From Sminthopsis crassicaudata (Eukaryota), in the NCBI RefSeq assembly GCF_048593235.1, contig NC_133620.1, positions 296,685,765-296,749,764 on the forward strand: 64,000 nucleotides of DNA, written 5' to 3'. The first letter of the stretch is position 1. Each line of letters opens with the position of its first letter. The translations under genes were made by a program, and so were the position numbers. The notes under the pieces were generated by a model that was not told the DNA's origin, did not search any database, and saw only the letters and a program-made list of their open reading frames with translations. This document shows, one piece after another, positions 13,141 through 41,700 of this stretch.

Positions 13141-13275
13141 NNNNNNNNNNNNNNNNNNNNNNNNNNNNNNNNNNNNNNNNNNNNNNNNNNNNNNNNNNNN
13201 NNNNNNNNNNNNNNNNNNNNNNNNNNNNNNNNNNNNNNNNNNNNNNNNNNNNNNNNNNNNNNNNNNNNNNNNNNN
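13141..13275. other. Assembly gap (135 N)
   Basis: N run. Confidence 1.
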
Positions 13276-16629: not shown

Positions 16630-17603
16630 TTCCCTGGGAAGGCCCATTATTATTGCTTTAGGATTACTGTGAGGAGGTAAAGGTAGGCTTGCGACTGTTA
16701 ATAGCAAGCAGCACTTTCCATTTCTGAAAACCCATCACTTGGGGGCCATTCTATGAGAGTCCCACTCCTCAGTGTGAGTGTGAAAGGCTGCCATGTTTAC
16801 CATGTCAGTTTCCACCTGTGCCCAATCATCGTCACCCACTTCCTGCCCTATTCCATCTCCCAAGTCTGTAGGCCTGACTCCTGTGTACTCCCACAAGGCG
16901 ATGCATAATTTCACATCTGAGGGAGACCCACTCTGTTCCGGGAGGGACTGGCTTTCTCCATGACTTTTGACTGCTTCCTGTGAACAGCTCTTATGCTGTC
17001 TCAATGTGAAGGCACCACTACAGTCCAGTTTGGGCTCTCTGGAAAGTCAAGTGACCGCATTCGCTTCCCAGCACAAGGACTTGTCTATTTCCCCCCGAGT
17101 TCCCTTCTCTGGAAACCGTTCTATGTAGGCTTTTGTACGGCCAGCAGAACTCTTCCGGTATTGGGTGACGTCATGCAATCTTCATTATCTGTCGAAGGGT
17201 TCTCTCAAGGTCTCCGAGCAGTTTTGGGGGTGAGGGGCGGAGGAAAAGTGCAGGGCGGGAAGGAAAAGGGATATCCCTCCCTCCCCCAACTCATGCCCGG
17301 GAGAAGCTTATATGCCAGGAAGAGATGCCAAAGACTGGACGGGAGGATAGGGAGGTGGCGAACTACTTTCCTTTCCCAGCCATGCTGTGGCAGGATATGG
17401 CTTGTAAAATCATGCGTGTAGCTGGAATTCCTTGGTGGGCGGGATCCTCCCGCCGGAGCATGGAAAGCATCAGTTTGCCTTTGGGGCTGTCTGGCTGCTG
17501 TGTGAGCTGGAGCTGCTGCTGCTGGCGCGGGATAGGGAAGAGTGCAGTGCTGGCTGCTCCTGCGCCTGCTCCTGCGCCTGGCCGGAGTGGGTGGGGGATG
17601 TCA

Positions 17604-17681
17604 CTATTTTTTAGTGTGTGGTTTGTTTCCTAGGAGCCAGTCGATCTCCAACACCTTCTGCGGCGTCAGCTGGGCCAGAAC
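17604..17681 (-). CDS. KCNAB3: KCNAB3 exon 14
   Basis: [25 protein letters not shown]. Confidence 0.95.
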
Positions 17682-20600
17682 CTGGGAAAGAAGGGAAGGC
17701 GCTGGGAGTCAGGCCAGGGAAAATGAAGAGGAGGGAGTGGAGCTCAGGGCCGAGAGGAATAAGCAGAGACCCGGCAGCCCGCAACGTGAAATGTGTCTCA
17801 GCCCCTTCTCTTCCTCTCCCTTTCCCAGTTACCTGCAGGGCTCCTAGGTTTTCCATCAGCTGTTCTGTGTTGGACACCTCCAGCAGGACGGAGCTGACAG
17901 CCTCGCTACGGAGACACCAAGCTGGGATGAAATGGAGAGGGGCGGGGGAAGAGCGCCAAAGAGAGGAAGATTAAGGGCCTAGACATCCCCATCAATGGAG
18001 CCTTTCCTTGGGCACCTAAACATTTTCTGATTTAAGTCATCATATGCAGTAATCCAATATTAAATTTCAGAGTACTAACAAGTGGGTTTAGATGGAGGGA
18101 GGGGTATACGTAGCTACAAATCCTCCAGAAATCACGTTTGTTCCTCTCATCCTCGAACTATATAAACTAATATAGTTGAGGGCTCACGTGAAGGTCCTAG
18201 CTAGCCTTAGGAAGACTTAGATTAAAATCCTGTTTCTCGGCATCTCATGCAACTCACTACAATTAGAACTTTACAGACCAGGTACCCATCTACATAGGTG
18301 GAGAGTTTCCACATTAAAAGTTCTCTAAAAGAATGAAATCCAGCTTAACCAAAATAGAAAGTAGATAAAGCATTTCTTGTAAGGACCAAATGAGATCATT
18401 TGGGTAAAACTATTTTTAAATCTTAAAGTGGTATTTAAATTTAGCCATTATAATTACATAGATTTCCATGTTTCTTTCCTCCTCCCCCAATCCCAAACTA
18501 AATAAAATCCTCTGATAGATTTATGATAAATTGTTTGAAGGCAAGGAAAATACCATTTTTGTTTTTGTTTTTCTCCTCTCTCAACTATGATTTTGAGAAT
18601 TACATGAGGAAAATGTCTAGCACAGGCTAGTCTATTTTAGGTTATGGGTTGAGGGTTTGTAGGAAGAGAGACTCCTTTTATTGTTTTTGGTTTTGACAGC
18701 AATGTCTCTTCACCAATAGAAAGCTGAGCCACTGTGCAGCCTAGTTGATGAGCAATAGGGAGCAGGTCCATGACCTTGACTTGTTGCTTCTTGCCATCTT
18801 CACTCTGTACTTTGTCCTTGAGCCACTGGTAGCTCTGGAAGAGAAAGGGAGGTAAAGAGGGGAGGGGAGAGGAGAGAAGGAAGCTGAGAATAACCCACAG
18901 ACTCATCTTTTTCCTTCCCAAGTAGCTAAGGTAGCTGAAAATTCCCAAACCTTGCTCTCTTCAGGTGCCATGGAATGGAAGTCTTAAAAGTGTCTTACCT
19001 TGATGGTACCCCTGCAGGTCTCTGGGATTCTTCCTTCATTCTTGCTAGTAATGACACCACAGGCCAAAGGAGACCGAGTCACTGATCCAACACCTGAGTT
19101 CAGGAGGAAAAAAGATTATGGGAAAAAAGGATAGGGAAAGGATGTGGACCAATTTTAATGGCTGGCAGAAGGGAAGAATATTGAGAAGAACATATAGAAT
19201 AAAGAGATAATATGTGGGGAGGAAAAGGACCAGGGAAGCTGAGGCTAGAAATGTCAGGCAGGATAGGGAGAATAGTCTCTAACCTATCTTGTGGTAGAGC
19301 TCAGGCAGCTGTGTTTCCATCTTATCCCTTTGAAACAGGTGATACTCAGCTTGTTCACATGCAGGGGGAATCAGGTTGAATTGTCGTGCCACTGAGTAGG
19401 CCTCCTAGATTAGAAGTAGGCATCAGAATACCCCAAACCTTTTAGCTTTTCTCCATATCTCCCCTCAACCCAAGTACATGGTAAGCATGTATTCTGTGAA
19501 TTAGAAGTTGAAATGTTTTTAAGGAAATATATAGTGGGAAGGTACTTACCATGATTTCTGCAGCTCCCCAGCGTGATGTCCCCCAGTACAGTGCCAGTCC
19601 CTGATTAATGACAAAAGTCATGGCCCGGACAATCTCTGGATGTGTGAGGGTGATGAAATCCTGACAGTTAGATCACTAGGATTCAAGGCGTTCATTCTCC
19701 CAGATGGATAAACCCTCTTCTCTACAGCCATTTCCCTCTAAAAACCTAGGTATCTCTATGTGATGATGAAAGGTTAACCCCAGTTTTCCCCTACCCTCCT
19801 TTCCTTTGCCCTCTTCTGAAATCCCTGATGGGAGATATGGGAAACATGGGAGCACCTTGATGTCCCTGGGATTGGAAAATTCTAGGGTTTAGTATACTAG
19901 AGCTGGGGAGGTGATCCCTGGGTTTATGGACGTCTTGTAAGTTTAGGCATTCTTGGGGTTATTTTCACCCTCCATGGGACTGTTGGGGTCCGAGCGATTG
20001 GCGAAGACTATATCTACATATCCCAGTTGAAGCCGTTCCAAGGAGCCCCATAAGCCTGGGGGAGGAGGAAGAGAAGATAAGTGACCCAATTCCTTCAGAT
20101 ATGGCCCCCTATGTTCCAACTCCCTAATATTCTACCTCTTAAGTTCAGTTTGCATATTTCATCCACTCTGATATGACACCCTTTCCTCCACCCCAGCTTT
20201 TTAATTTGCTGATCTAATTCCTGCATTCTCATTATTTACCACCATCCCCCTCCCCCACAACATTCTTTAACCCCTTACCCACTCAACATTCCTAGTCCCT
20301 TACCCTCAATGATGTGTTTTCGGCTCAAGCCTTTTTCCGTCTCTGCCCTGTGGAAAAGTTGAGTTTACACTGGATGGTGCTAAAGATAGGTGGTAAGAAT
20401 TACAATTCGATCCCTACATCTCCTGATTAAGGACTTAGCTAGAGTGATAAGTATGATAAGTATTTGAAAAGGATAAGTAATAAGTATTTGGAAAGGACTA
20501 GCAAGTTCAAGAATCCTTTTTACAATGATAAATCAATCAACAGGCATTTTTATTAAGCACCTAGTATGTGGTAGGTGCTAGGGATATGGAAACAAAAATC

Positions 20601-23600
20601 AAACAGTCCCTTGCACTCAAAAGATTACATCTCAAAAGTCTCTGGTTGAAAATCTCAGGTGAAGGAAAATTCACTATCTCTAAAGGCAATTCATTTCATT
20701 TTTGAACAGTTCTCATTATTTAGCTTAAATTTGCGTTTGCAAATTTTATCATTGCTTCTTTTCCCTTCATTTGCAATAAAAAGAAGGTTTTCTTCATGAC
20801 AGCCTTTTCAAATATTTGGACAGCTATCATGTCTCCACTTCAAAATGTCATCCCTAGTGAAGGGTATGGGGAAAGGGAATACTCACTGCCCTCCCCAAAA
20901 GATTTTGGTGGTGATGATATAGCTGGATCTCCTTAAAAAGAAAAAAGGGAAGTGGGGGTAGGGTCAGCAGGAATAAGGTCAATGTGAACCTCCCCACCCA
21001 AATATCCTCTGCCTTGTACCCCAAATCCCAGCCTCACCTCCAACCCTTGCTCTTAAGGATATTGCCCAGAGTTCGTTCTGCCCTAGAAAAGGGGAAATAA
21101 CAGGGAGCAAGGGGCTCTCTCTTCTAGTGATAGCCCCCTACAACCTCTACTTCTTGTTCTAAGAGAGTTCAAAAAGCACTTATTATTCCCTAGGTCCTAT
21201 ATTACATTGAAAAGAACAAAGAACTTGTTCTAGGGAGTTATAGCTCTGTAGTCTGGTAAGAACAAAAATACAGATTTTTTTTTTTTTCCATTTGCCCTAA
21301 CCCATTCTTCCATTTACTTTGCAGTATTCTTTGACCATCTTATTTTGAATGCCTGTGAACTTAAGAATAATATACAACTCACATTTGCATGACACTTTAA
21401 AGGTGTACAATTGTTCCCCCCCCCTCGGCCAACATCCCTATAAAGTAGGCAGTGCAAGTATTATTCCTATTTTTCAAACAAGGAAACAGCTTTGGTGGTT
21501 AAAATGCTTTGACTAGGGTCATACAGCTAAGTAAGCATCTTACTTAATAGGTTTGAATCCTAGCTCCTCCTTTGTCTTCTGTCTTTGTAATCATTTAGAA
21601 ATTCATTGTCTTGTAACATTCCTTTTATTTTTGGTATTTACAATTTATAAATCTTGTTAACTAAATTTTTAGTCTCCAAAGTCTCCTTGTTGGCCTCACA
21701 TGTTGGTGCTCAATAAATATATATTATTTTTATTTTATTTTGCCTATATTTCCTGTTTGTTCACACTTAATATTTAAAGAGAAAATACTTTAGGGGTTTC
21801 AACATCCATATTTTGGAATCCCCTCTATGACCCAACATGATAGGAGAAGCAAACGTTCACTGGAGACAGAGATTACCTAAATCAAAGATGAGACACCCAC
21901 TTTTCCTTTCCACTCCCAATCTTCCCCTCACTAATTTAACTCATACCCTTCCCCTTTTCCCTGGTTCATACTTTCCTGCTGCATACACCTCAGCTGTGTC
22001 AAACAGATTTACTCCATGCTCATATGCCACAGTCATCAGATTCTCTGCTGTCTAGGAATGAGTATGTTGGGGTAGAGTTAATACTATTTACCTTTCCATT
22101 GGTTTTCTCACCTTTCTTAACCTTCCAAATCCCAAGAGACTTCTAAGTGCTTTGAGTCTTCAAATATAACACCATTATCCCATGCCTGCCCCCCATATCT
22201 TTTCCACCCTTTTCCCAATTTCCCCCCACCTTGTTTCTCATATCCCTTATAATCTCTTCTCTGACCCACCCTTCCACAATCCATCTATTTCCCCATCTAT
22301 TTCTCCCACCTTTCTTTCTCTATTCTCTATAACCCTCCCAGTATTCCCAACTATCTTTTGGTATCAGAAACATTTATACCTCATCTGAGATCTGAGACCC
22401 AAATGTGACCCAGGTACCTGCAGAAAGAAAATCCAGGGACATGGGGCTGTGAGAGACAAGGCATCTGAAAACCTTTACCCTTGCAGCCTCTTCATTCTTT
22501 CATTTCCCATTAGACTCACCAAGGCCAAGACAGGATACTCGAAGACCAGACTTTCCCAAATTCCTGTTGGATAAAAGAGAATCCAATAGAAGGATTTTCA
22601 CCTTCGGTTCCCCTTGAAGATCTAAATAATAAGCTTTCTGGCTCTTTGCTTCTCTGAATGTGTTTCTCCATCCCATATTCTATTCCCCCATTTCAAAACC
22701 CCAGGCAAATTCTACTCTGAGTGAAGCCCAGTGATATCAGTGTAGACTGTTCACATTCAAATATTTGTTGAATGAATGAATTCATCTTCCTTTGGCACCT
22801 ACTGTGCAATTTCTATTTTCTCTGCTATCAGTAAAATCTGCTACCTGATTTCTCTTGACTCATGTTTCTCTTCACAGTCATATTCATGGTTTTCCCTGTA
22901 TAGCAGCACATGATCAGTATTAGTTTGTGAGACTATCTTGAGTTGGGGAAGCCTGAAAAGACTGTTAATATGGAGGGGGAAAGGTAACAACAGGGTCCAG
23001 GGAGGGTGAGCTATCTCCAGAAAATTAATCAGCAAATTGAGGTTTTGGTTGGTGGAAAATAGAGACCCCTGGGATCCCCTAAATGCTTGTGAAAGGTGGA
23101 TATAAAGCTGATAAATGATTAATTCCCTTCAATCCCTTAGGCAGATAGTTGTCTGTCAGAAGGAATCTTTATTCAATCATCAAGATTGGTACAGCAAAGG
23201 GAACAGGAAACAAGGAAGCCCAGCCCCTTTTCTTATGGTTCTCCACCCCACTATTCGTATTGGCTAATGAAACTCCTTTTGAGACCCTTTTGAATCTTCT
23301 CCCCCCTTCCCCAAAAGTTTCAGTTATTTAACTCTCAGAGACTGAGAAACGATGGGAGTGGGGGGCAGGATGTGGTAAGATATCTGATTCCTTAGGTGAC
23401 TAAACCTTATCAGATTAATAACCTCACCACCCCATCCCAGAATAGGATACAATCCCTTTTGCAATATCAGAACAATGCTATTTACCAAGAAATCCATCTA
23501 TTTTTTTCTGCAGTGGAAGGGGGGAAGAGGGAAAGAGCTCGATGTTCTATGCCTATGGGGTGGGGTTGTGGGCTCCTAGCAGCATCTTATATACAGTATC

Positions 23601-24542
23601 AATTCCTTCTCACTACTCCTTCCAAAGTCCCTTTTGCTTTGCCCACAGTTCTGCATATCCCCTTGATACCTTGGGGACCCAAAGTTTTTTCCCCTTGACT
23701 GGGGTCATTTCATGCCTGAAAAAAAGTAGAGGATGATGAAGTTGGAGTCAGGAGGGTGGGAATTGTTGGTGAAAATGGGTCAAAACCATTACTGCTTTAA
23801 TGACAATAGGGAATTTAGCTAGCCCTCTGCCAAGTCTAGAGATGTAGCGGTTGGAACGCATGGGGGGGGGGGGGAAGAGGAACAGACCCAAAAGACACTT
23901 CCTAAGTAGCATGAGGAAATCTTAAATACCCTCTCAGCCCAACCTCAGGACACTTTTTTTTTGAGGTACTCATGCCTTAGGGATGAGAAGGAAGATACAA
24001 AAAGGTACACAGCGAACCCTAACAACTTACTCTGATTCTCAAAAGAGTCAGGAGGTGGAGATGGAGAACAACAGACAGCCAAGGAGAGAGAATGTGAAAA
24101 AGAGATGGAGATAGAGATGTAAGTAAGGAATTGGAATGTTGCTGATGAAATTTGAGGAGTCTAGGATAATGGAATGTAGGTCGCTTGGGAGGCATGGGGT
24201 GGTGGGGTTGCCGAAGCAAGGGGAGGCAGAGGCAGGGGCAGGGACCCGGCTAAAAAGGGGCTGTTCTGGCCCTCTCCTTCAGTACCTGTACTTCATGCTG
24301 GTGCCTCGGCCGGTGCTCTCTCGTAGGGGCCCCGAGTGGGTCACAGCTGCAGGACCCAGGGGTCGTGCGACTGGCACAGTCCGCGCCTTGGGGCCGTTTC
24401 CCCCTCCCCCTGAAGGATTTCCGTGACTGCTGGCCACTCCACTGCCGTTCCCGCCCCCAGGGACAGGTCGGGGTCCACACAGACGGTCCTCACTGCTCCT
24501 GCTGCGGAGGTTTTGCTCAGTGCAAGCGATGGACACCTGCAT
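17604..24542 (-). CDS. KCNAB3: Voltage-gated K+ channel beta-3 subunit (AKR6 family), 14 exons, 409 aa
   Basis: [25 protein letters not shown]...[17 protein letters not shown]...GNKPHTKK*. All introns GT-AG; 1230-nt CDS in frame; catalytic D/Y/K/N tetrad present. Confidence 0.97.
17833..17921 (-). CDS. KCNAB3: KCNAB3 exon 13
   Basis: [30 protein letters not shown]. Confidence 0.95.
18714..18834 (-). CDS. KCNAB3: KCNAB3 exon 12
   Basis: [40 protein letters not shown]. Confidence 0.95.
18999..19093 (-). CDS. KCNAB3: KCNAB3 exon 11
   Basis: [32 protein letters not shown]. Confidence 0.95.
19284..19404 (-). CDS. KCNAB3: KCNAB3 exon 10
   Basis: [40 protein letters not shown]. Confidence 0.95.
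19550..19635 (-). CDS. KCNAB3: KCNAB3 exon 9
   Basis: [29 protein letters not shown]. Confidence 0.95.
19969..20055 (-). CDS. KCNAB3: KCNAB3 exon 8
   Basis: [29 protein letters not shown]. Confidence 0.95.
20304..20347 (-). CDS. KCNAB3: KCNAB3 exon 7
   Basis: [14 protein letters not shown]. Confidence 0.95.
20887..20931 (-). CDS. KCNAB3: KCNAB3 exon 6
   Basis: [15 protein letters not shown]. Confidence 0.95.
21038..21082 (-). CDS. KCNAB3: KCNAB3 exon 5
   Basis: [15 protein letters not shown]. Confidence 0.95.
21972..22051 (-). CDS. KCNAB3: KCNAB3 exon 4
   Basis: [27 protein letters not shown]. Confidence 0.95.
22380..22417 (-). CDS. KCNAB3: KCNAB3 exon 3
   Basis: [13 protein letters not shown]. 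Confidence 0.95.
22520..22563 (-). CDS. KCNAB3: KCNAB3 exon 2
   Basis: [14 protein letters not shown]. Confidence 0.95.
24286..24542 (-). CDS. KCNAB3: KCNAB3 exon 1 (inactivation ball N-terminus)
   Basis: [10 protein letters not shown]...GTSMKYR; donor gtactg. Confidence 0.95.
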
Positions 24543-25110: not shown

Positions 25111-25233
25111 CTCCACCTCCCCAGTCTGCACACAAGCTCCACCTCCCCAGTCTGCACACAAGCTCCACCTCCCCAGGCTGCACACAAGCTCCACCTCCCC
25201 AGGCTGCACACAAGCTCCGCCTCCCCAGGCTGC
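25111..25233. repeat. 26-bp minisatellite, about 4.7 copies (CTCCACCTCCCCAG[T/G]CTGCACACAAG)
   Basis: Units start at 25111, 25137, 25163, 25189 and 25215 (partial). Confidence 0.95.
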
Positions 25234-28800: not shown

Positions 28801-30844
28801 GAACTGTAGTTATTGCCTAGACAAGAATGAAATAGTCCTTGTTTTCAATCAATCAGCAACTTTCAACCAACCTTTATCAACATTTTGCAATTATATCATT
28901 AATATGCTATGATCAACCTTCACTAAAGTACTACTTTGAAACCTCATTTCTGGAAGCTACCTCTGCTAGATCTTACCATATTGGGAAATTTTTAAAAAAG
29001 CAGTCTGGACTATACACTTAAGATCTGAAGAGAAGCCTCACATTTGTAGAGTAGTTTGGATATCAAGTGATACTCCTCTTTGGTTCATGAGAAAACATTT
29101 AGATGTGGTGTGACAACTGGTAGAGAGGGTATCCATCCCAAAGAAATCTCATAATTTTAAAGTATGTTATGACCAAATCTTATCATATTTCAATATTTCA
29201 GTGTATTCTAGAATTTAGGGTCTCATTGACATGGGGATTCCTTCCACTGGTTAGGCTTACAATTCTATCCCATAGAAATCCTATGCTTTTTAATTCTGTG
29301 ATGTTTACCCAGTGTCATCTATAGATCCTTATATATGATATATATAACTTACTGAAGACCTTTCTCTAGATAGTTAAGCTCTTTGAAGGTAAGGTTCATT
29401 TTATTTTTGTCTTTGCGCTATGTGTGTATAGCCAGTAACAGATGCTTAATATTCTGCCGATTAATCATTTTTTTCATCTGTTTATGCCACAGACAACCAA
29501 CAGAAAAGAGAATTTTGAGCTGAGTCCACAAATGTGCAAGAAAAACGATAAAAATTTTTTAGAACCTTTGAAGCTTTATAATCTTTGATATTTGTCTTGT
29601 CCCTTGCAACAGACAATTTCATGCCATATATAATAACATGCATACCAGGACTTTTTTGGGTTAGCATAAAACTGGAAACAAAGTGAATAGCCATCAGCTG
29701 AAGGGCAGGAAAATTTGTGGCATATGAATGTAGTAAAAGATTATGATGATCCTGAAGAATTCAAGGAATCATGGGAAGACTTATATAAGTTGAAACTATT
29801 CTGGACCCTTTTTCAGAATGATGTTTTTAAATGCATAGGCTTTAAAGGAAATCAATTATATTCTGAGAGTTTCTCAAAATATTTTTTTTAAACTTGAGAG
29901 ATATTGACAGGCAAAGTAGAGAGAGGACACTAACCCCACTGTAGATATGGTGTAGAACATCCCGAATGGGTCCTACCCCCAAATCGGTGTTCATTACAAC
30001 CTTGACCCCAGTGGGTGTCTCATAGTAATGGAGCTTGTATCGACTTGTCTGGAAAGCCAGGAATCCATCTTTCCTGAAGAATGGATGTTAAGGAACACGT
30101 CTGATCTGGATCTATGATCACACACACGTTCAGTCCCTAATGAGAGGCTTTATATAGTTTCCCTCCCTACGCTAACTTTTTTTTTCCCCATTTGGTCCCA
30201 TCCACTAAGTCGTATCTCCATTCCTTGTGGTCAGCCAACTTCCTCTCCAGAGTCTTTGTCTCTATAGATCCAAGAAGCCCACACCCCATTTCCACCCGTA
30301 GGATACATGTCCACAGGTGACATCTTGCTGACAAAAGATCGGATGGAGAAGAGCATTCCATACATCAGCTTGTACTCCTGACAGTAGCAGGGAATAAACA
30401 AACATTTTATATTTATGCAGTACTTATCAAGTGTTTTTTTTCACCACATTCCTTTCGGAGGGTGGGGGGAGGAGGAACTATATTGTACCCATATTACAGA
30501 GAAAGGAACTGAGACCCAGAGCAATTAAATTATCTCATACAAGGAAGCCGAGGCAGGGAAGGGCAGAAATGACTTGGCAAAAGTTAGAATAGTGAATTAA
30601 ACCCAGGGTTCTTTTCACTAGGCCACACTTCTCAGAATGGGAGGGGATGGGGAGGTCTTTCGGGGCAGGGCAAGGTTTCAGGAGAGCAGGCTGTGATGCT
30701 GAATTCCCTCCTCCCTCCCCCCCATCCCCGTATCCTTCGAGTCACCTCCTCCTTGGGGATCCCCGCCTGCTTCTTTCGGTGCCACTCGCTATAGTGCAGG
30801 CAAACCCCATCTCGGTCAAACAAGTACAGGTTGTGGACAGTCAT
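25698..30844 (-). CDS. TRAPPC1: TRAPP complex subunit 1 (Bet5): complement(join(25698-25826,29935-30073,30307-30377,30746-30844)), 145 aa
   Basis: MTVHNLYLFDRDGVCLHYSEWHRKKQAGIPKEE|EYKLMYGMLFSIRSFVSKMSPVDM|KDGFLAFQTSRYKLHYYETPTG...YSG|LYVELVVKNPLCPLGQTVQSELFRSRLDAYIRSLPFFSARAG*. Confidence 0.97.
27350..27830 (+). mobile_element. L2 LINE fragment in TRAPPC1 last intron
   Basis: Degenerate purine-rich L2 sequence; ends approximate. Confidence 0.5.
29535..29892. repeat. Inverted near-copy (about 94%) of 37420-37779
   Basis: Manual alignment: about 18 substitutions and 3 indels over about 360 bp. Confidence 0.9.
29935..30073 (-). CDS. TRAPPC1: TRAPPC1 coding exon 3
   Basis: 139 nt; donor gttagt. 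Confidence 0.93.
30307..30377 (-). CDS. TRAPPC1: TRAPPC1 coding exon 2
   Basis: 71 nt; donor GTATCCTA (U12-like). Confidence 0.95.
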
Positions 30845-32748: not shown

Positions 32749-35700
32749 GTGGGGCTGGGCACTAGGGGTGATGGAAACGCTGATCATTGGATGAATATAG
32801 AAAAAAGATAGGATTTTTAAAGGGTTGAATTTGGATTGCATGCTTTAATTCAATAAACATAAACAATAAACTTTGAGAAAGGTTTGGTGCTAGACAAAAA
32901 TNNNNNNNNNNNNNNNNNNNNNNNNNNNNNNNNNNNNNNNNNNNNNNNNNNNNNNNNNNNNNNNNNNNNNNNNNNNNNNNNNNNNNNNNNNNNNNNNNNN
33001 NNNNNNNNNNNNNNNNNNNNNNNNNNNNNNNNNNNNAGTGTCTGAGACCAGATTTGAACTCGGGTTCTCTTGAATTCAAGGCTGGTGCTCTATCCACTGC
33101 GCCACCTAGCTGCCCCTTATATATATATTTTTAACAACTTGCATAAATAAGCAGCTTTAGGGTGGAGGCCAGGAATTAGGAAAATATTCCCACTGGAGCT
33201 GGAGAAAATAAGAATTCCAAAAACTGTGGTACTGATGGGTGAATTCCAGGTATGAGTGATACCTATGGGAGAATATGAAGCTAGATAATAAAATGCTACA
33301 TTTGATGAACTTCTAGTAATCTAGTTTGGGCTGAACAGGAAATTTGTCAACAGAAATTAATGTGAATTAAGTCAGATTATTGATAAATTGTAGAAAGTTT
33401 TAAATGATAACTTGAAGAATTTATATTTTATCCTAGGGGATCAGGGATCTGTTGAATAAATTTGAACAGGAGAATGACATAATCAGATATGGCCTTTAGA
33501 AAGATTATTTTGGCAGTGTTGTGAAGTTAGGCTTGGAAAGAGAAAATTGGAAGCAGAAACAGAATTAGAAAGGTATATAAACTATGATATCTTTGGCTTA
33601 ATGGTATGTAAGAGGATATGGTCCTGTGTAGAAGGGGGAAGATATGGAGATAAGAGTTCCCAGCAGCTGAGTGGATATAGCAGGTGAGGGAAAAGGAATC
33701 ACTGTTGGCTCAGAGCCTACAAACCTGTACCTGGAAAGAGAGTATTGTTCTCAAAGAAACTGCAGAGTAGAGGAGTGGTTTTAAGGAAAAAGATAATTCT
33801 ATTTTAGATATATTGAGTTTGAAGTTTAGTGGTAAATTCAGGTGGAAATGCCAAGTAGGCACTTGGCAATTTAGGACTTGGAGTTCAGAATAAAGATTAA
33901 GGCTTGATGTATATATTTGAGAGTCATCCTCCTAGTGATAATATAATCCTTAGGAGAGAGGAAATCTCAGAATAAAAGGCAGGAAATATATGATTATTCA
34001 TTGAAAGAAGTGAACTGTTCAGGAGTAGCAGAGGGTAATCAGCAATGACAAAACTGTAAAGATTAGGCAATTTGAGGACTGAGAAAATATAAATTTAGCA
34101 GTTGTTGAAGTAACCTTAGAATTTAATGCCTAGAAAGCTAACCATTATAGTAATAGATAGCATAAGTAGTGACGAAGAGTGCCAGATTTGGAGGTAGGAA
34201 GACCTGAGTTCAAATCTGGCCTTGAATATTTACTAGTTGTGTGGCCCTAGGCAAATCATTTAACTGTTTGCCTCTGGTTGCCCATCTATAAAATGAACTG
34301 GAGATAACAAACTATTCCACTATCTTTCCCATGAAAATCTCAAATGGGGCCACAAAGAATCAAGAAGCTACTGAATTTAGTGCCTTAAGGTTTGCAAAAT
34401 GCCTCACAACAAGAAGATAGGTGCTATTATCAACCCCATTTTATAGAAGAGGAAACTGAGGCTGAGAAAAGTTAATTGATTTACCCAGGTTACAAGCTAG
34501 TAAAAATCTGAAGCAAAAATAAATTCAGATCTTCCTGATTCCAAGTGCTATTCATTGTACCACATTACAGTATGAAGCCAGTTATAACTTATACTAGTAA
34601 CTGTGTTTGTGAATAAGAAAAAGGACCAGGATTTTATGAGTTTGGCACACTGGAAAATTCTTCCTAAAATGTCACATAAGTAATACTTTTGGGAACAGTT
34701 AGAGATGTGCCACTGCTGGGAATATAGCTCCTAGGAAGATCTAGAGTCATATCTACTGAGAAGTATAATCATGGTGGTAAAATGTGTGGGTTACAAGATA
34801 GGAGCAGGAGTTAGGGATAGTAAAGTAACAAAGTTTAACATTAGCATTTTGAATTTTGAATCTAACAAGTTAATCACAAAACATAGTATTCTAATTGAAC
34901 TTATAATCAAACGGGTTATTATTTCTTATAGAGAAAAAGCTAGTGAGAGAAGTGGCGCTCAATGGAGTCACTTCATTTATACGTTTTTACTGAGACAGGA
35001 AAGTAATTAATTCCTAAAGTTGGGAGTGGGATAGGGAACAGGGAAGATTATAATATCTCCTTTAACAGGAAACAGAGTGTAGGAATAAACAGGCTTTGGG
35101 TCTCTGCCCTTTAGGGAGGCTCCCAGCATATATTGGAAATGGAAAATGTACGGGGTCACCTCCAAAGCATGCTCCAAGCTTCTCGGGACACTGCTCCTCG
35201 TAAGTGAGCCTGCTTCTCTGGGTCCATAAAAGGGGTATAGCCAGAAGGGCTGGAAGACCATGAAAGGGAAGCAACAGGGAAGAAGGTGAGGTGGAAAGGA
35301 CTATTTGTTCTTTCATCTTTAAATGGGCTCTGCCCCTGTCCATACCTTACCCCTAGCCCTTCGATTCCTCTGGCTGCTTGCAGGGGATAACCTTATTCCA
35401 GGTACTGTCCCAGAGAGACGAGAAGAAGACTCTTTTGACAGTGACAGCACAGCCACTCTGCTCAAGTGAGTTACCCTTAGATCCTTGTGAGTCATATAGA
35501 TGTTCTCTGTAGTGGGATTTTAGCTCTTAAACTATCTGTACTATCCTCTGTAACTCTGCTTTGTTTTTGGCATACAGGCATTCAGCTTTCCCAACTTGTC
35601 TCATTTTTTTGCTCAGAATTTTCTTCCTCTTACTGTTAACTTATCTGCATAAGGTGGTAGAGCAGTTTAATGGTGTAGTGGAAAGGGCACTGGACTGAAT

Positions 35701-38700
35701 CCCAAGAGTTGAACTCTTGGCTCAGCCTATCATTAATTAGTTAAGAAATCCCTTTGGGTATGTTTCTTTACCTCTGTGAGCTTTGATTTCCTCAGTAAAA
35801 GCAATCTAATCTAAAGTCCCTTCTAGTTATAAGTTTCTGTGATTTGCTTAGTACTCGGCCCCTCCAAGAGCTATCTCCACCCAGCTCAGCTCCAGCCTTG
35901 GAGGAGTTGTTCCCTCGATATACTAGTATCCGTCCTGGAACTCCTCACTACTTTCCTGATCTGCAGGGACTAAGAGATGCCTTGGACACAGAACATACCC
36001 GCCGTAGGGTAAGTTGAGGAATTGAAGTAGATGAATCATTCCTGAGGGAATAACAGATGTTGAAAGAGTCAATGAATGTCCAAATTTGTCCAGAATGACC
36101 AAGTAAATAGGTGCTGGACCTAAACTATAAACTACTTTATGTCCCCCATTTTAACATCCTTTGCACTAGTTGAGAGGGGAAAGAAGTATGAAGATAAAAT
36201 AAATATTGCCCTTCATTCTTCTCTTCTAGGTGACCTAATTGCCCATATGCCCTGTTCTCCTAGATGGGAAGGAAAGTGTGGGGAATCTTCCTTAAAACCT
36301 TGCCATGTTTAGGTGATGTGTATATTAGGCTTCTTAGGTGGAACTTGCTTCCCATTTTTGTTATTCCTTGTGTTTCCAAGGACTCCAAGACTCTTTCCCA
36401 GTGCTCTGGGGGGAAAAAAAGGAACTCTATTCCTGAAGGCTATGAATAACATGTTAGAGAGATAATTGAAGTTCAGTCCTAAACCCATCTTCCTTTTTGT
36501 GACTCTGATTCTTGCCCCATAGTCACCAAGTATCCCTCTTTTAGTCTAGACTGTGCCACCAGAGACCTAGACAACCTTTTTCAGTTTTCATTTTTCCCTG
36601 CCAGAAGGCTCTGAGCCAGGACAAGTAAAAAGTGAATGCTATTCCTTGCTTTTTGTCCTTAGCATTGTGAACGTCACATCCAGAATCTACAGACTCGTGT
36701 GTTAGAACTACAGCAGCAATTAGCTGTTGCTGTGGCTGCAGACCGAAAGAAAGACCTTATGATTGAGCAACTGGACAAGGTGCCAAGGGAACAAGGGAAA
36801 CTAGACCTGGAGTACAATATCACCTGCCCAAAACAAACAGGAAACAAGGGATTGGATTTAGCCGTAGTGGAATTGTGGAATGAATGAGAGATTATATTTA
36901 TTTATGATTTTAATTTTGTAATGTAAAAAGCATTTTTAACATTCATTTTTTAAAATTAGAGTTCTCAGTTCTCTGCCTCCCCTTTGATTGAGAAGACAAG
37001 CAATTTGATATCGTGCAGTTATGCAAAACATTTCTGCATTGTTCATGTTATGAAGAATGAGGGCATTATAAACAGGTTTTTCTGACTATTGTCATATACA
37101 TGCTAGGAGACAGAGGTGACTACCAATCCAGTCAGAAGACAGAGACACAACTGTTGTAAGATTTCACCAAACCTTCCCTTTCTCCACCTCCTATATACTA
37201 TTTAGACCTTGGCCCGAGTGGTAGAGGGCTGGAACCGACATGAGGCTGAAAGGACAGAAGTTCTTCGGGGGCTGCAAGAGGAGCAAAAGGCTATTGAACT
37301 TACACGAAGCCAACAGCAAGAGGTACATGACCTAGGCATTAGAAGACAGTGCTTAGAAAGTAAGGAAGTTGGAATTTTAGTCATAAGAAACATGATACTA
37401 GATCTGGGTTCACCTGTTTTTTAAAAAAAAATATTTTGAGAAACTCTCAGAAGATAATTAATTTCCTTTAAAGCCTATGCATTTAAAAACATCATTCTGA
37501 AAAAGGGTCCAGAATAGTATCAACTTATGTTAAGTCTTCCCATGATTCCTTGAATTCTTCAGGATCATCATAATCTTTTACTACATTATATGCCACAAAT
37601 TTTCCAGCCCTTCAGCTGATGGTTATTCACTTTGTTTCCAGTTTTATGCTACTACAAAAAAGTCCTGCTATGCATGTTATTATATATGGTATGAAATTGT
37701 CTATTGTAAGGAACAAGACAAATATCAAAGATTATAAAGGTTCAAAAGTTCTAAAAAAATTTTAATCATTTTTCTTGCATAATTTCAATCTAGATCAATT
37801 AGACCAATTTTAAACTCCACCAACAGTTTATTAATGTGCCTATCATCCCGTTAGCCTTTTCAGTGGTGACTTTATCAATTTGATAGTCAATTTGATGGTC
37901 AGAGTTGTTTTAATTTTCATTTCTTTTATTAGTAATTTGGAACATTTATTCAAATAACTTTTGTTAGTTTGAAAACGTTCCATTCTTTGTCCATTGAACA
38001 TGATCTTGAAGCCTCATTTGGTAAGCCTATAACTCTACCCCCCAAATTAATAACATTTCATTGTCAACACTATCCCTCTCACCTCTTCTTGCTCCATTTG
38101 GCATTCAAAAAAATATTTGGGAAAAGTTGGGTGCCCCAATCTAATCAGCCCTTTGGTATTAAGAGTTAACTTTAGTTTGGAATGTGTATACTTTGTGTGT
38201 TCTGGGACTTGGCTTCTCATTTTCTCTGAATTCTATCATCTCTTCTTCCTCCCTGCCTGTAGACTATAGCTCGACTAGAACAGAGTCTAAAGCAGACGAA
38301 GGAAGCCCTGAGTAGGGAGCGGGAAGGGACCAACCAACAGCAACAGGAGCAAGAGACATTGGTGAGAGAGCCAGACTATTTCACTTACCTGGGACTGTGA
38401 CTTCCTGGGAACTGGGCTATCAAGGAAGTTTGGTATGCAGGAAGCTGATAACCTGCTTCTGGGTTCTGACTGAAAAGCTGATATGTGAATCTGGTGGTAG
38501 ATAGATAATGAAATAATTACTAACATAAGCTAGGAGNNNNNNNNNNNNNNNNNNNNNNNNNNNNNNNNNNNNNNNNNNNNNNNNNNNNNNNNNNNNNNNN
38601 NNNNNNNNNNNNNNNNNNNNNNNNNNNNNNNNNNNNNNNNNNNNNNNNNNNNNNNNNNNNNNNNNNNNNNNNNNNNNNNNNNNNNNNNNNNNNNNNNNNN

Positions 38701-41700
38701 NNNNNNNNNNNNNNNNNNNNNNNNNNNNNNNNNNNNNNNNNNNNNNNNNNNNNNNNNAGTAGAAGGAGACCAATTTTAGTGGTAAGGAATGTTCAACCAG
38801 AATTCCAAACTTAGATCTTTTGTTGTCTACTGAGATTTATTTGGTTTATAATTTGGAGCTTATAATAATAATAATAACAACTCATTTTTATAGGATATGA
38901 ATATTTAACAATCACTTTATTACAATAATCTTATGATATAGATAGTATAAGTAGTAAGTAAATCTTTTTTTTTTTTCACAAATTTTTACAAATAATTTCT
39001 CTGAACCACAGTTTCCATAATTGAATTGTGTAACGTCATATGGTTAGTAAACAACAGATATGGTACTTAAACCCATTTTTTTTTTTTTTTTAAACTGCAC
39101 TAAGTATGAGTGCTATCTACTGGCTAGCTGGAAAGACATAGGTATCAAGAGATATTTCCTAAGTATGGGAGATGAGGTTTGTCAATATACTGGGCCTTGG
39201 TAGTTATCTTTTTTTTCCTTTCTTTTTTAATTAATTAATCTTTATTAAAGCGTTTTTATTTATAAAGTATATGCATGGGTAATTTTTCCAACATTGACTC
39301 TTGCAAAACCTTTTTTCCAAATTTTCTCCTCCTTCCCTCCCACCCCTTCCCCTAGCTGGCAGGTAGTCCAATATATTAAATATGTTAAAATACATGTTAA
39401 AGCCAATATATGTGTAATATTTGTACAGTTTTCTTGTTGCACAAGAAAAATCAGATCAAGAAGGAAGAAAAAAAAACTATGAAAGAAAACAAAATGCAAA
39501 CAAACAACAGAGTGAGAATGCTATGTTGTGGTCTACACTCAGTTCCCATGATCCTCTTTCTGGGTGTAGATGGCTCTCTTCATCATTGAACAAGTGGAAC
39601 TGGTTTGAATCACCTTAATGTTGAAGAAAGCCACGTTCATCAGAATTGATCATTGTATAGTCTTCTTGTTTCCATGTATCTCCTGGTTCTGCTCATTTCA
39701 CTTAGCATCAGTTCATGTAGGTCTCTCCAAATCTCTCTGAAATTATTCTGCTGGTTGCTTCTTACAGAACAATAGTATTTCATAGCATTCATATACCATA
39801 ATTTATTAAGCCATTCTCTAAATTGATGGGCATCCATTCAATTTCCAGTTTCTTGTCACTACAAAGAGAGCTGCCACAAACATTTTTGTACATGTGGGTC
39901 CCTTTTCCCTCTAAGATCTCTGAGATATAATTCCAGTAAAAACATTGCTGGGTCAAAGGGTATGCACAGTTTGATGACTTTTTGAGCATAGTTCCAAACT
40001 GCTCTCCTGAATTGTTGGATTCACTCACAGTTCCACCAATAATGTTACCAGTGTCCCATTTTTCCCACATCCCCTCCAACATTGGTCATTATCTTTTCCT
40101 GTCATCTTTGCAAATCTGAGAGGTGTGTAGTGGTATCTCAGAGTTTTCTTAATTTGTATTTTTCTGATCAATAGTGATTGGGAGCACCTTTTCATGTGGC
40201 TACAAATAGTTTCAATTTCTTCATCTGAAAATTGTCTGTTCATATCTTTTAACCGTTTATTAATTGGAGAATGGCTTAAACTATTATAAATTTGAGTCAA
40301 TTCTTTATATATTTTAGAAATGAGGCCTTTATCAGATCCTTTGAATGTGAAAATGTTTTCCCAGTTTATTGCTTCCCTTCTAATTTTGTCTGCATTAGTT
40401 TGTACAAAAACTTTTAAACTTAATATAATCAAAATTATCTATTTTGTGATCAATAATGATCTCTAGCTCTTCTTTGGTTACAAATTCCTTCCTCCTCTAC
40501 AAATCTGAGAGGTAAACTATCCTATGTTCTTCTAATTTGTTTATAATATCATTGTTTATGTCTAAATCATGAACCCGTTTCAACCTTATCTTGGTATACA
40601 GTGTTAGGTACTTTCTGCCATACTAGCTTCCAATTTTTCACAGCAGTTTTTGTCAAATAGTGAATTCTTATCCCAAAAACTGGGGCCTTTGGGTTTGTCA
40701 AATACTAGATTGCTATAGTCATTGACTATATTTTGTTCTGTGAACCTAGTCTATTCCACTGATCAACTTCTCTATTTCTTAGCCAGTACCAAATGATTTT
40801 GATGATTGTTGCTTCATAATGTGGTTTTTGATCTAGGACAGCTAGGCCACCTTCATTTGCTTTTTCTTCATTAATTCCTTTGAAATCTTGACCTTTTGTT
40901 CTTCCAGATGAATTTTGTTGTTATTTTTTCTATGTCAATAAAATAGTTTCTTGGGAGTTTGATGGTATAGCACTAAATGAATAGATTAGTTTAGGGAGTA
41001 TTGTCATCTTTTTTTATATTCGCTTGACCATCCATGAGCATTTGATAGCACTTGATATTTTTCCAATTGCTTAGTTCTGACTTAATTTGTGTGGATAGTG
41101 TTTTGTAGTTTTGCTTATATAGTTCCTGACTTTCCCTTATTTTAAATGGAATTTCTTTTTGTATCTCATGCTGTTGGATTTTGTTAGTGATGTATGCTGA
41201 TGATTTATGTGAATCTATTTTGTATCTTGCAACTTTGCTGATGTTGTGGATTATTTCTAATAGTTTTTTAATTGATTCTCTAGGGTCTAATAGTTTTTTT
41301 AGTTGATTCTCTAGGGGCCTTGGTAATTACCTTGTAATTATCTTGGCTGTCTGTTGCGGCTATAGAAGGAAGCTCGACAAGCTTTAGCTCGTAGCTTAGA
41401 GCGGGAACAGCAACGGTGTCGGACTCTACAGGAGGAGCGGGATGAGGCTCGGGCAGAGCAGCTAAATCAGAACAGAGAACTAGAAGCACTCCAAGCTGCC
41501 TTGGAGGAAAAGCATCAGGCCTGGACCCAGCGTGAACATCAGCTTGAAGAACGCTGTAAAAGTATACAAGAAGAGGGCCGGATCCAATTGGAGAGGGAAC
41601 AGGTAAGGGTAGGAGAGAAACATGGCCTGAAGCCTAAGGTAGAGAGAGGAGAATGAGCAGAAAGTGATACATAAATGGGGAAAGAAAAGGCAAAGAGACT

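Follow-up and report, generated by a model that had tools for sequence, protein, structure and literature searches.

The dunnart KCNAB3 gene is intact and encodes a Kv-beta3 with a putatively remodelled, largely marsupial-wide NADPH pocket

Introduction

Can a Kv-beta3 channel subunit change residues of its cofactor pocket while its gene stays intact, and, if so, do such changes mark decay, a private allele or an old and maintained trait? This question is raised by KCNAB3, which in the fat-tailed dunnart Sminthopsis crassicaudata encodes Kv-beta3, an aldo-keto-reductase subunit (AKR6 type) of Kv1 channels. The gene lies in the window analysed here, a stretch of 64,000 nucleotides from contig NC_133620.1 (positions 296,685,765 to 296,749,764, assembly GCF_048593235.1). 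An earlier note on this DNA had reported radical changes in the pocket for reduced nicotinamide adenine dinucleotide phosphate (NADPH), and had proposed that they might weaken or alter NADP(H) binding or else reflect relaxed selection. We think it probable that the dunnart KCNAB3 is functional, and that its pocket has been remodelled stepwise, kept by selection and left with a lowered or altered binding of NADPH. To judge from the alignments, most of the pocket residues concerned are synapomorphies that go back to the marsupial stem and have been kept ever since.

Altered pocket residues in an intact gene

Six-frame reading combined with exact matching identified a complete KCNAB3 coding gene on the minus strand of the window (24542..17604), whose 14 exons sum to 1230 nucleotides, that is, 409 codons plus a TAG stop. 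The introns are GT-AG throughout, the reading frame is unbroken, all the splice sites are canonical, and the exons match the Sminthopsis crassicaudata Kv-beta3 isoform X1 in RefSeq (XP_074167954.1, P0372) exactly, at 409/409 residues; the earlier statement that the gene stays intact is thus borne out. Residues are numbered here after the full-length Kv-beta2 chain 3lut_A, which corresponds to the position in the 409-residue protein minus 46. When the exons were compared one by one with solved Kv-beta2 chains by phmmer, exons 11, 12 and 13 aligned without gaps onto residues 238-268, 270-308 and 310-338, respectively. The following codons of these exons depart from the canonical pocket or its surroundings.

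19074..19076, minus strand: codon CGG, W243R, one T>C step from TGG, private to the dunnart
19038..19040, minus strand: codon AAT, Y255N, adjoining the 2'-phosphate contact K254
19035..19037, minus strand: codon GAA, D256E, marsupial-wide
18832..18834, minus strand: codon AGC, G269S, dasyurid
17899..17901, minus strand: codon GCT, G316A, marsupial-wide
17878..17880, minus strand: codon GAG, G323E, marsupial-wide

The positions and residues previously given for R243, N255 and E323 proved exact on the minus-strand reading and in the alignment, and the motifs KSYQW (G269S) and EAVSS (G316A) are both present at the codons listed. As a result of these changes, the aromatic residue that stacks on the nicotinamide is missing in the dunnart, which has Arg243, while it is Trp in every other marsupial compared; at the 2'-phosphate site the dunnart protein retains K254, S325 and Q329 and has neither Y255 nor G323, the latter being replaced by Glu. 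The rest of the site is largely retained: D85, Y90, K118, N158, S188, R189, Q214, R264, Q329 and N333, which had been named as retained before, were all found in the exons, together with K254, S325 and E332. The catalytic tetrad Asp85, Tyr90, Lys118 and Asn158 is present in all 30-32 marsupial sequences and in dunnart exons 4, 6 and 8; the fourth residue of this tetrad is Asn in AKR6 and His in AKR1, two groups of the aldo-keto reductases (AKRs). The inactivation ball encoded by exon 1 is likewise preserved, its first 23 residues being the same in the marsupials, monotremes and placentals compared, with two differences in a turtle, from which marsupial Kv-beta3 would be expected to retain the function of the ball as a channel inactivator.

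Most of the pocket changes arose on the marsupial stem

A profile-free search with exon 12, word searches with database proteins and cluster look-ups provided named Kv-beta3 proteins for comparison. They cover 13 species of marsupials (Monodelphis, Gracilinanus, Dromiciops, Macrotis, Phascolarctos, Vombatus, Trichosurus, Petaurus, Notamacropus, Sarcophilus, Antechinus and Sminthopsis) and two of monotremes, besides many placentals and also reptiles, amphibians, lungfish and coelacanth; four human-labelled proteins (P0002, P0221, P0272 and P0278) served in no query and were left out of the alignment, the tree and the site counts, though not of the motif census. Among about 220 non-marsupial Kv-beta sequences, a set that includes isoforms and whose counts are hence not independent species counts, position 323 is Gly in 211 of 212, position 316 is Gly in all but one of 213 (212/213), position 255 is Tyr in 214/219 and position 243 is Trp in 202/219. 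Such near-invariance argues that the residues in the dunnart pocket are not chance variation. In marsupials, by contrast, Glu323, Ala316, Glu256 and the loss of Tyr255 were found in 13/13 species, with position 255 being His in 10 of them and Asn in the 3 dasyurids. Since G316, G323 and Y255 are found in platypus and echidna as well as in placentals, turtles, lizards and frogs, while the changes are fixed in marsupials, we place their origin on the marsupial stem. A simple reconstruction of that stem yielded 13 substitutions in the core of the protein, of which V211A, A307S, G316A and G323E hit near-invariant sites; Y255H is a fifth, which fell under the 80% threshold of the reconstruction and was not listed by it because dasyurids carry Asn.

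The picture is different for Trp243. Within the 13 marsupial species W243R occurs only in Sminthopsis, with Trp in both Sarcophilus and Antechinus, and it is one of just 2 substitutions private to the dunnart in 409 residues, the other being T37A in the chain. Thus, the proposal that the changes characterise this particular Kv-beta3 holds for W243R, which is confined to the dunnart, but not for Glu323 and the loss of Tyr255, which are marsupial-wide, nor for Asn255, which is dasyurid. We also considered G269S, which had been listed among the changes, and rejected it as a notable pocket change: Ser269 is common to the three dasyurids compared, and this position is Ser, Cys or Val in many other Kv-beta proteins, so that its change in the dunnart is unremarkable.

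The same alignment contained some further departures. Dunnart, antechinus and devil share G353W (codon 399, 17640-17642, exon 14), where Gly is found elsewhere and the tail is otherwise conserved. Koala (P0373) carries K254Q at a 2'-phosphate contact, Monodelphis (P0340) carries R264K and A247T, and Antechinus (P0366) carries C248Y and S160W.

Losses of pocket residues outside the marsupials

Changes at the same positions are found outside marsupials. In felids, Kv-beta3 has W243L in 9/9 cat species examined, from Panthera, Prionailurus, Lynx, Felis, Acinonyx, Leopardus and Herpailurus (P0343, P0381-P0394; cat, lynx, cheetah, tiger, leopard, jaguar, jaguarundi, Geoffroy's cat and fishing cat), and the gene is intact. 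As in the dunnart, the stacking Trp has been lost, here family-wide, but to Leu by a TGG to TTG type of change rather than to Arg; and unlike the dunnart protein, felid Kv-beta3 keeps G323 and Y255, with the exception of Leopardus, which has Y255H on top of W243L. By analogy, felid W243L provides a natural precedent for the loss of Trp243 in the dunnart. Felid Kv-beta3 also has a one-residue deletion in the loop after position 243 (RA-IK), a deletion also seen in the meerkat. Both elephant species (P0305, P0395) have Y255C. At the cofactor contact N333 a His is found in all placental Kv-beta3 proteins (IEHLG), where marsupials, monotremes, reptiles and amphibians have Asn. Nearly all the sequences that depart at 243 or 255 are proteins named mammalian Kv-beta3, as are all those that depart at 323 except a single Ser, the exceptions to the pattern being three singletons (Lys and Thr at 243 and Ser at 323). 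These comparisons suggest that the Kv-beta3 pocket is labile across mammals while the gene remains intact, and that the dunnart is one more case of this rather than a unique event.

A burst of change followed by conservation

If the pocket residues were the first hits of decay, the gene should be under relaxed selection or on its way to becoming a pseudogene. At least three radical changes at otherwise near-invariant pocket sites would fit such a course, and the loss of Kv-beta3 pocket residues in other mammals hints at a weaker constraint on the pocket of this paralogue. We therefore turn to the branch lengths of the core tree, built by a quick search under LG+G4 from 42 Kv-beta core sequences, human isoforms excluded. 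In this tree, which recovers the clades expected, the marsupial stem has a length of 0.069 with a mean crown depth of 0.028, against a placental stem of 0.042 and a mean crown depth of 0.054; hence, the marsupial stem is the longest among the mammalian clades, while the marsupial crown branches are about half the placental length. Core identity among marsupials ranges from 95.4 to 99.1% overall, being 95.4-97.9% between opossum and the Australasian species and 98.5-99.1% within dasyurids, and no variation was seen in ball residues 1-23, in the catalytic tetrad or at most of the cofactor contacts. From the long stem, the short crown branches and the preserved ball and tetrad, we infer that marsupial Kv-beta3 went through a burst of change on the stem and was tightly conserved afterwards, which is neither relaxed selection nor decay. 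Several other observations run against decay as well: the frame is unbroken with canonical splice sites, the dunnart has merely the two private substitutions, and most of the unusual residues are marsupial-old and have been fixed since, the sole later change being that at 255 from His to Asn in dasyurids. Consequently, the relaxed selection that the earlier note had offered as one option finds no support here, and at the protein level incipient pseudogenisation is already largely refuted; we consider it very improbable.

Is W243R a fixed trait of the dunnart?

W243R needs to be judged separately, for the reference animal might be heterozygous at this codon or carry an allele of its own or, with less likelihood, the codon might contain a base-call error; in each of these cases the marsupial-wide changes would stand regardless. 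Besides the window, R243 was seen in RefSeq isoforms of this species, which probably derive from the same assembly as the window, and both other dasyurids have Trp; the evidence for R243 is at the level of assembled sequence. Single-model calls can mislead, as an older Pongo abelii model (P0331) has R243 (VTRYPLACG) where newer orangutan models have W, a difference that is probably one of assembly or of individual. On the other hand, each of six sequencing runs, from two samples and two studies, contained in its own contigs 97-100% of the 31-mers sampled from 17600-19400. A total of 194 of about 1771 31-mers were sampled, for which we estimate a chance of about 3% that none spans codon 243, and this recovery makes a base-call error at codon 243 unlikely. 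Either sample is possibly the source of the assembly. The felid family demonstrates that a residue other than Trp can become fixed at this position. Weighing these observations, we regard it as unlikely that R243 is an allele of this kind or an error and not a fixed trait.

Predicted consequences for cofactor binding

Mutants of Kv-beta1.3 at the counterparts of Tyr255 and Arg264 (Y307F and R316E) reportedly lose NADPH binding, but we do not build on them here. What the altered residues may do can be approached from related enzymes. In AKRs the nicotinamide ring lies stacked against an aromatic residue, which is Trp206 in AKR18 (PMC9427786), and pairing K217 of that enzyme with K254 puts Trp206 in register with Kv-beta2 Trp243 (PMC9427786). 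In Kv-beta2 (AKR6A2) the 2'-phosphate of NADP+ contacts K254, S325 and Q329, and acidic replacements at the equivalents of these residues in AKR18 raised the dissociation constant (Kd) for NADPH 6-11-fold and that for NADH 1.3-1.8-fold (PMC9427786). In xylose reductase, K270, S271, N272 and R276 of the loop IPKSNTVPR bind the 2'-phosphate, and changing them shifts the preference to NADH (PMC2213684). By spacing (N272 with S325 and R276 with Q329), G323 would occupy the position of xylose reductase Lys270. The same loop after strand beta-8 holds the 2'-phosphate in xylose reductase (K270/N272/R276) and in the AKR18 enzyme DepB (K217/R290/Q294), and acidic or neutral residues put into it move binding away from NADPH and towards NADH (PMC2213684; PMC9427786). 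The difference from marsupials, the dunnart included, is that the AKR variants were engineered, whereas the acidic Glu323, equivalent by spacing, arose naturally and in a channel subunit.

Taken together, we propose the following course. In the marsupial ancestor, V211A, Y255H, A307S, G316A and G323E would have arisen together, along with D256E and several loop residues; later, in dasyurids, H255 would have changed to Asn and G269 to Ser, and in the dunnart lineage alone the nicotinamide-stacking Trp243 would have been replaced by Arg. The negative charge of Glu323 at the 2'-phosphate loop, with Tyr255 lost beside K254, would be predicted to repel the 2'-phosphate, so that marsupials as a whole would bind NADPH with lower affinity or prefer it less strongly to NADH. 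In the dunnart, Arg243, by removing the stacking platform, would be predicted to loosen the hold on the nicotinamide still more. Kv1.5 inactivation by Kv-beta3 is reportedly enhanced by NADPH (PMC9317154); with an altered pocket, the coupling of inactivation to the pyridine-nucleotide redox state would therefore be expected to be reduced or retuned, with the ball mechanism intact. Given the retention of the ball, the tetrad and most cofactor contacts, as well as the signs of purifying selection, the protein probably still serves Kv channels as a subunit conferring N-type inactivation. Our best guess at the functional outcome is the one first suggested for this gene, namely that its NADP(H) site is weakened or altered.

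The changes could also be silent, with near-normal binding of NADPH, Glu323 pointing toward solvent and His or Asn tolerated at position 255. In line with this, the direct 2'-phosphate contacts K254, S325 and Q329 and the pyrophosphate/nicotinamide contacts S188, R189 and Q214 are kept, the conservation of the catalytic residues would be pointless unless a nucleotide were bound, and other Kv-beta proteins differ among themselves at positions 256, 265 and 326. However, the near-invariance of G323, G316 and Y255 in other Kv-beta sequences indicates that these residues are not free to vary, acidic residues in this loop of related AKRs cost 6-11-fold in affinity for NADPH (PMC9427786), and individual marsupials have lost still more of the pocket, the koala through K254Q and the opossum through R264K. 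Silent changes strike us as a possible but rather unlikely explanation. A switch of cofactor appears somewhat more doubtful still: by analogy with the related AKRs, Glu323 together with His or Asn at 255 might favour NAD(H), or the adenosine site might be empty. If the cofactor was switched, inactivation of Kv1 channels in marsupial neurons would report the glycolytic or mitochondrial NADH/NAD+ couple instead of NADPH/NADP+, and Arg243 of the dunnart and Leu243 of felids would represent further steps toward a nucleotide-independent beta subunit.

Several points weigh against our preferred reading of a maintained subunit with lowered or altered NADPH binding. The argument for purifying selection is made at the protein level; W243R comes from reference-derived sequence; the equivalence of G323 with the Lys of the IPKS motif is one of motif spacing and not of superposition; and the retained tetrad, together with S188, R189, Q214, K254, R264, S325, Q329, E332 and N333, speaks for continued binding of some nucleotide.

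Gene structure, orthology and neighbourhood

The exons of the dunnart KCNAB3 gene, with the residues that they encode, are as follows.

24286..24542, minus strand: exon 1, inactivation ball and chain, with the dunnart-private T37A
22520..22563, minus strand: exon 2
22380..22417, minus strand: exon 3, T56, W57 and Q63 kept
21972..22051, minus strand: exon 4, catalytic D85 and Y90 in NLFDTAEVY; PF00248 at 22.8 bits for this exon alone
21038..21082, minus strand: exon 5
20887..20931, minus strand: exon 6, catalytic K118 in TTKIFWGG
20304..20347, minus strand: exon 7
19969..20055, minus strand: exon 8, N158 in IVFANRSD
19550..19635, minus strand: exon 9, S188 and R189 in WGTSRW
19284..19404, minus strand: exon 10, Q214, and the marsupial-wide V211A in IPPACEQ
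18999..19093, minus strand: exon 11, strand beta-7 and the next loop, with R243, K254, N255, E256 and R264
18714..18834, minus strand: exon 12, beginning at the Ser269 codon
17833..17921, minus strand: exon 13, strand beta-8 and the adenosine 2'-phosphate loop; PF00248 positions 247-274
17604..17681, minus strand: exon 14 with the TAG stop and the dasyurid-specific G353W

Single exons scored 22.8 and 14.6 bits against the AKR profile PF00248, which is under the cut-off of 24 bits because the exons are fragments; on full-length marsupial Kv-beta3 orthologues, PF00248 is among the precomputed matches. The upstream neighbour of KCNAB3 is a TRAPPC1-like gene of the Sybindin family, also on the minus strand, whose first coding exon (MTVHNLYLFDRDGVCLHYSEW, about 30746-30838) scored 25.6 bits against PF04099 (cut-off 25), and a camel read-through model joins PF04099 and PF00248 in one protein. 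CHD3 - KCNAB3 - TRAPPC1 is the gene neighbourhood that we take to be expected in mammals. In the core tree, the dunnart protein (P0372) falls within the marsupial clade, marsupials are sister to placental Kv-beta3, and monotremes lie outside. Thus, by both tree and synteny, the gene in the window is the orthologue of mammalian Kv-beta3.

Placental and monotreme Kv-beta3 (mouse P0315 and platypus P0214) resemble the dunnart protein in their 14-exon core, the same ball, D85/Y90/K118/N158 and a length of 404-409 amino acids, but they have W243, Y255, G316 and G323 where the dunnart has Arg, Asn, Ala and Glu, and N333H is present in the placental and not in the marsupial proteins. Kv-beta2 (AKR6A2; NADP+-bound in PDB entries 1QRQ, 3EAU, 3LUT and 2A79) has the same AKR fold and aligns without gaps across 238-338; unlike dunnart Kv-beta3, this paralogue has no inactivation ball and has a canonical pocket (W243, K254-Y255 and G323-A324-S325).

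Two other features of the window were recorded. A tandem repeat with a 26-base-pair unit (4.7 copies, 97% matches) occupies 25111-25233 within a G+C-rich stretch, about 570 base pairs upstream of the KCNAB3 start codon, and runs of N occur at three places, 13141-13275 (135 bases), 32902-33036 (135) and 38537-38757 (221).

Discussion

It is still debated whether Kv-beta proteins sense the redox state in vivo and which nucleotide they read, and to our knowledge nearly all the evidence has been obtained by expressing engineered pocket mutants in heterologous cells. Our literature search found no earlier description of the marsupial Kv-beta3 pocket variant. The Kv-beta3 of marsupials, and of the dunnart among them, is a natural variant of a known subunit, and it joins other natural clades in which an intact and maintained Kv-beta3 has an altered pocket: cats with W243L and elephants with Y255C, besides marsupials and the dunnart, which adds W243R to the marsupial set. 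For annotation, this means that the unusual residues are to be read as lineage traits and not as errors or signs of a pseudogene. For the biology of the family, these natural variants offer a ready-made test of whether Kv-beta3 needs its cofactor for inactivation and trafficking, and of whether its preference for one cofactor over the other can shift.

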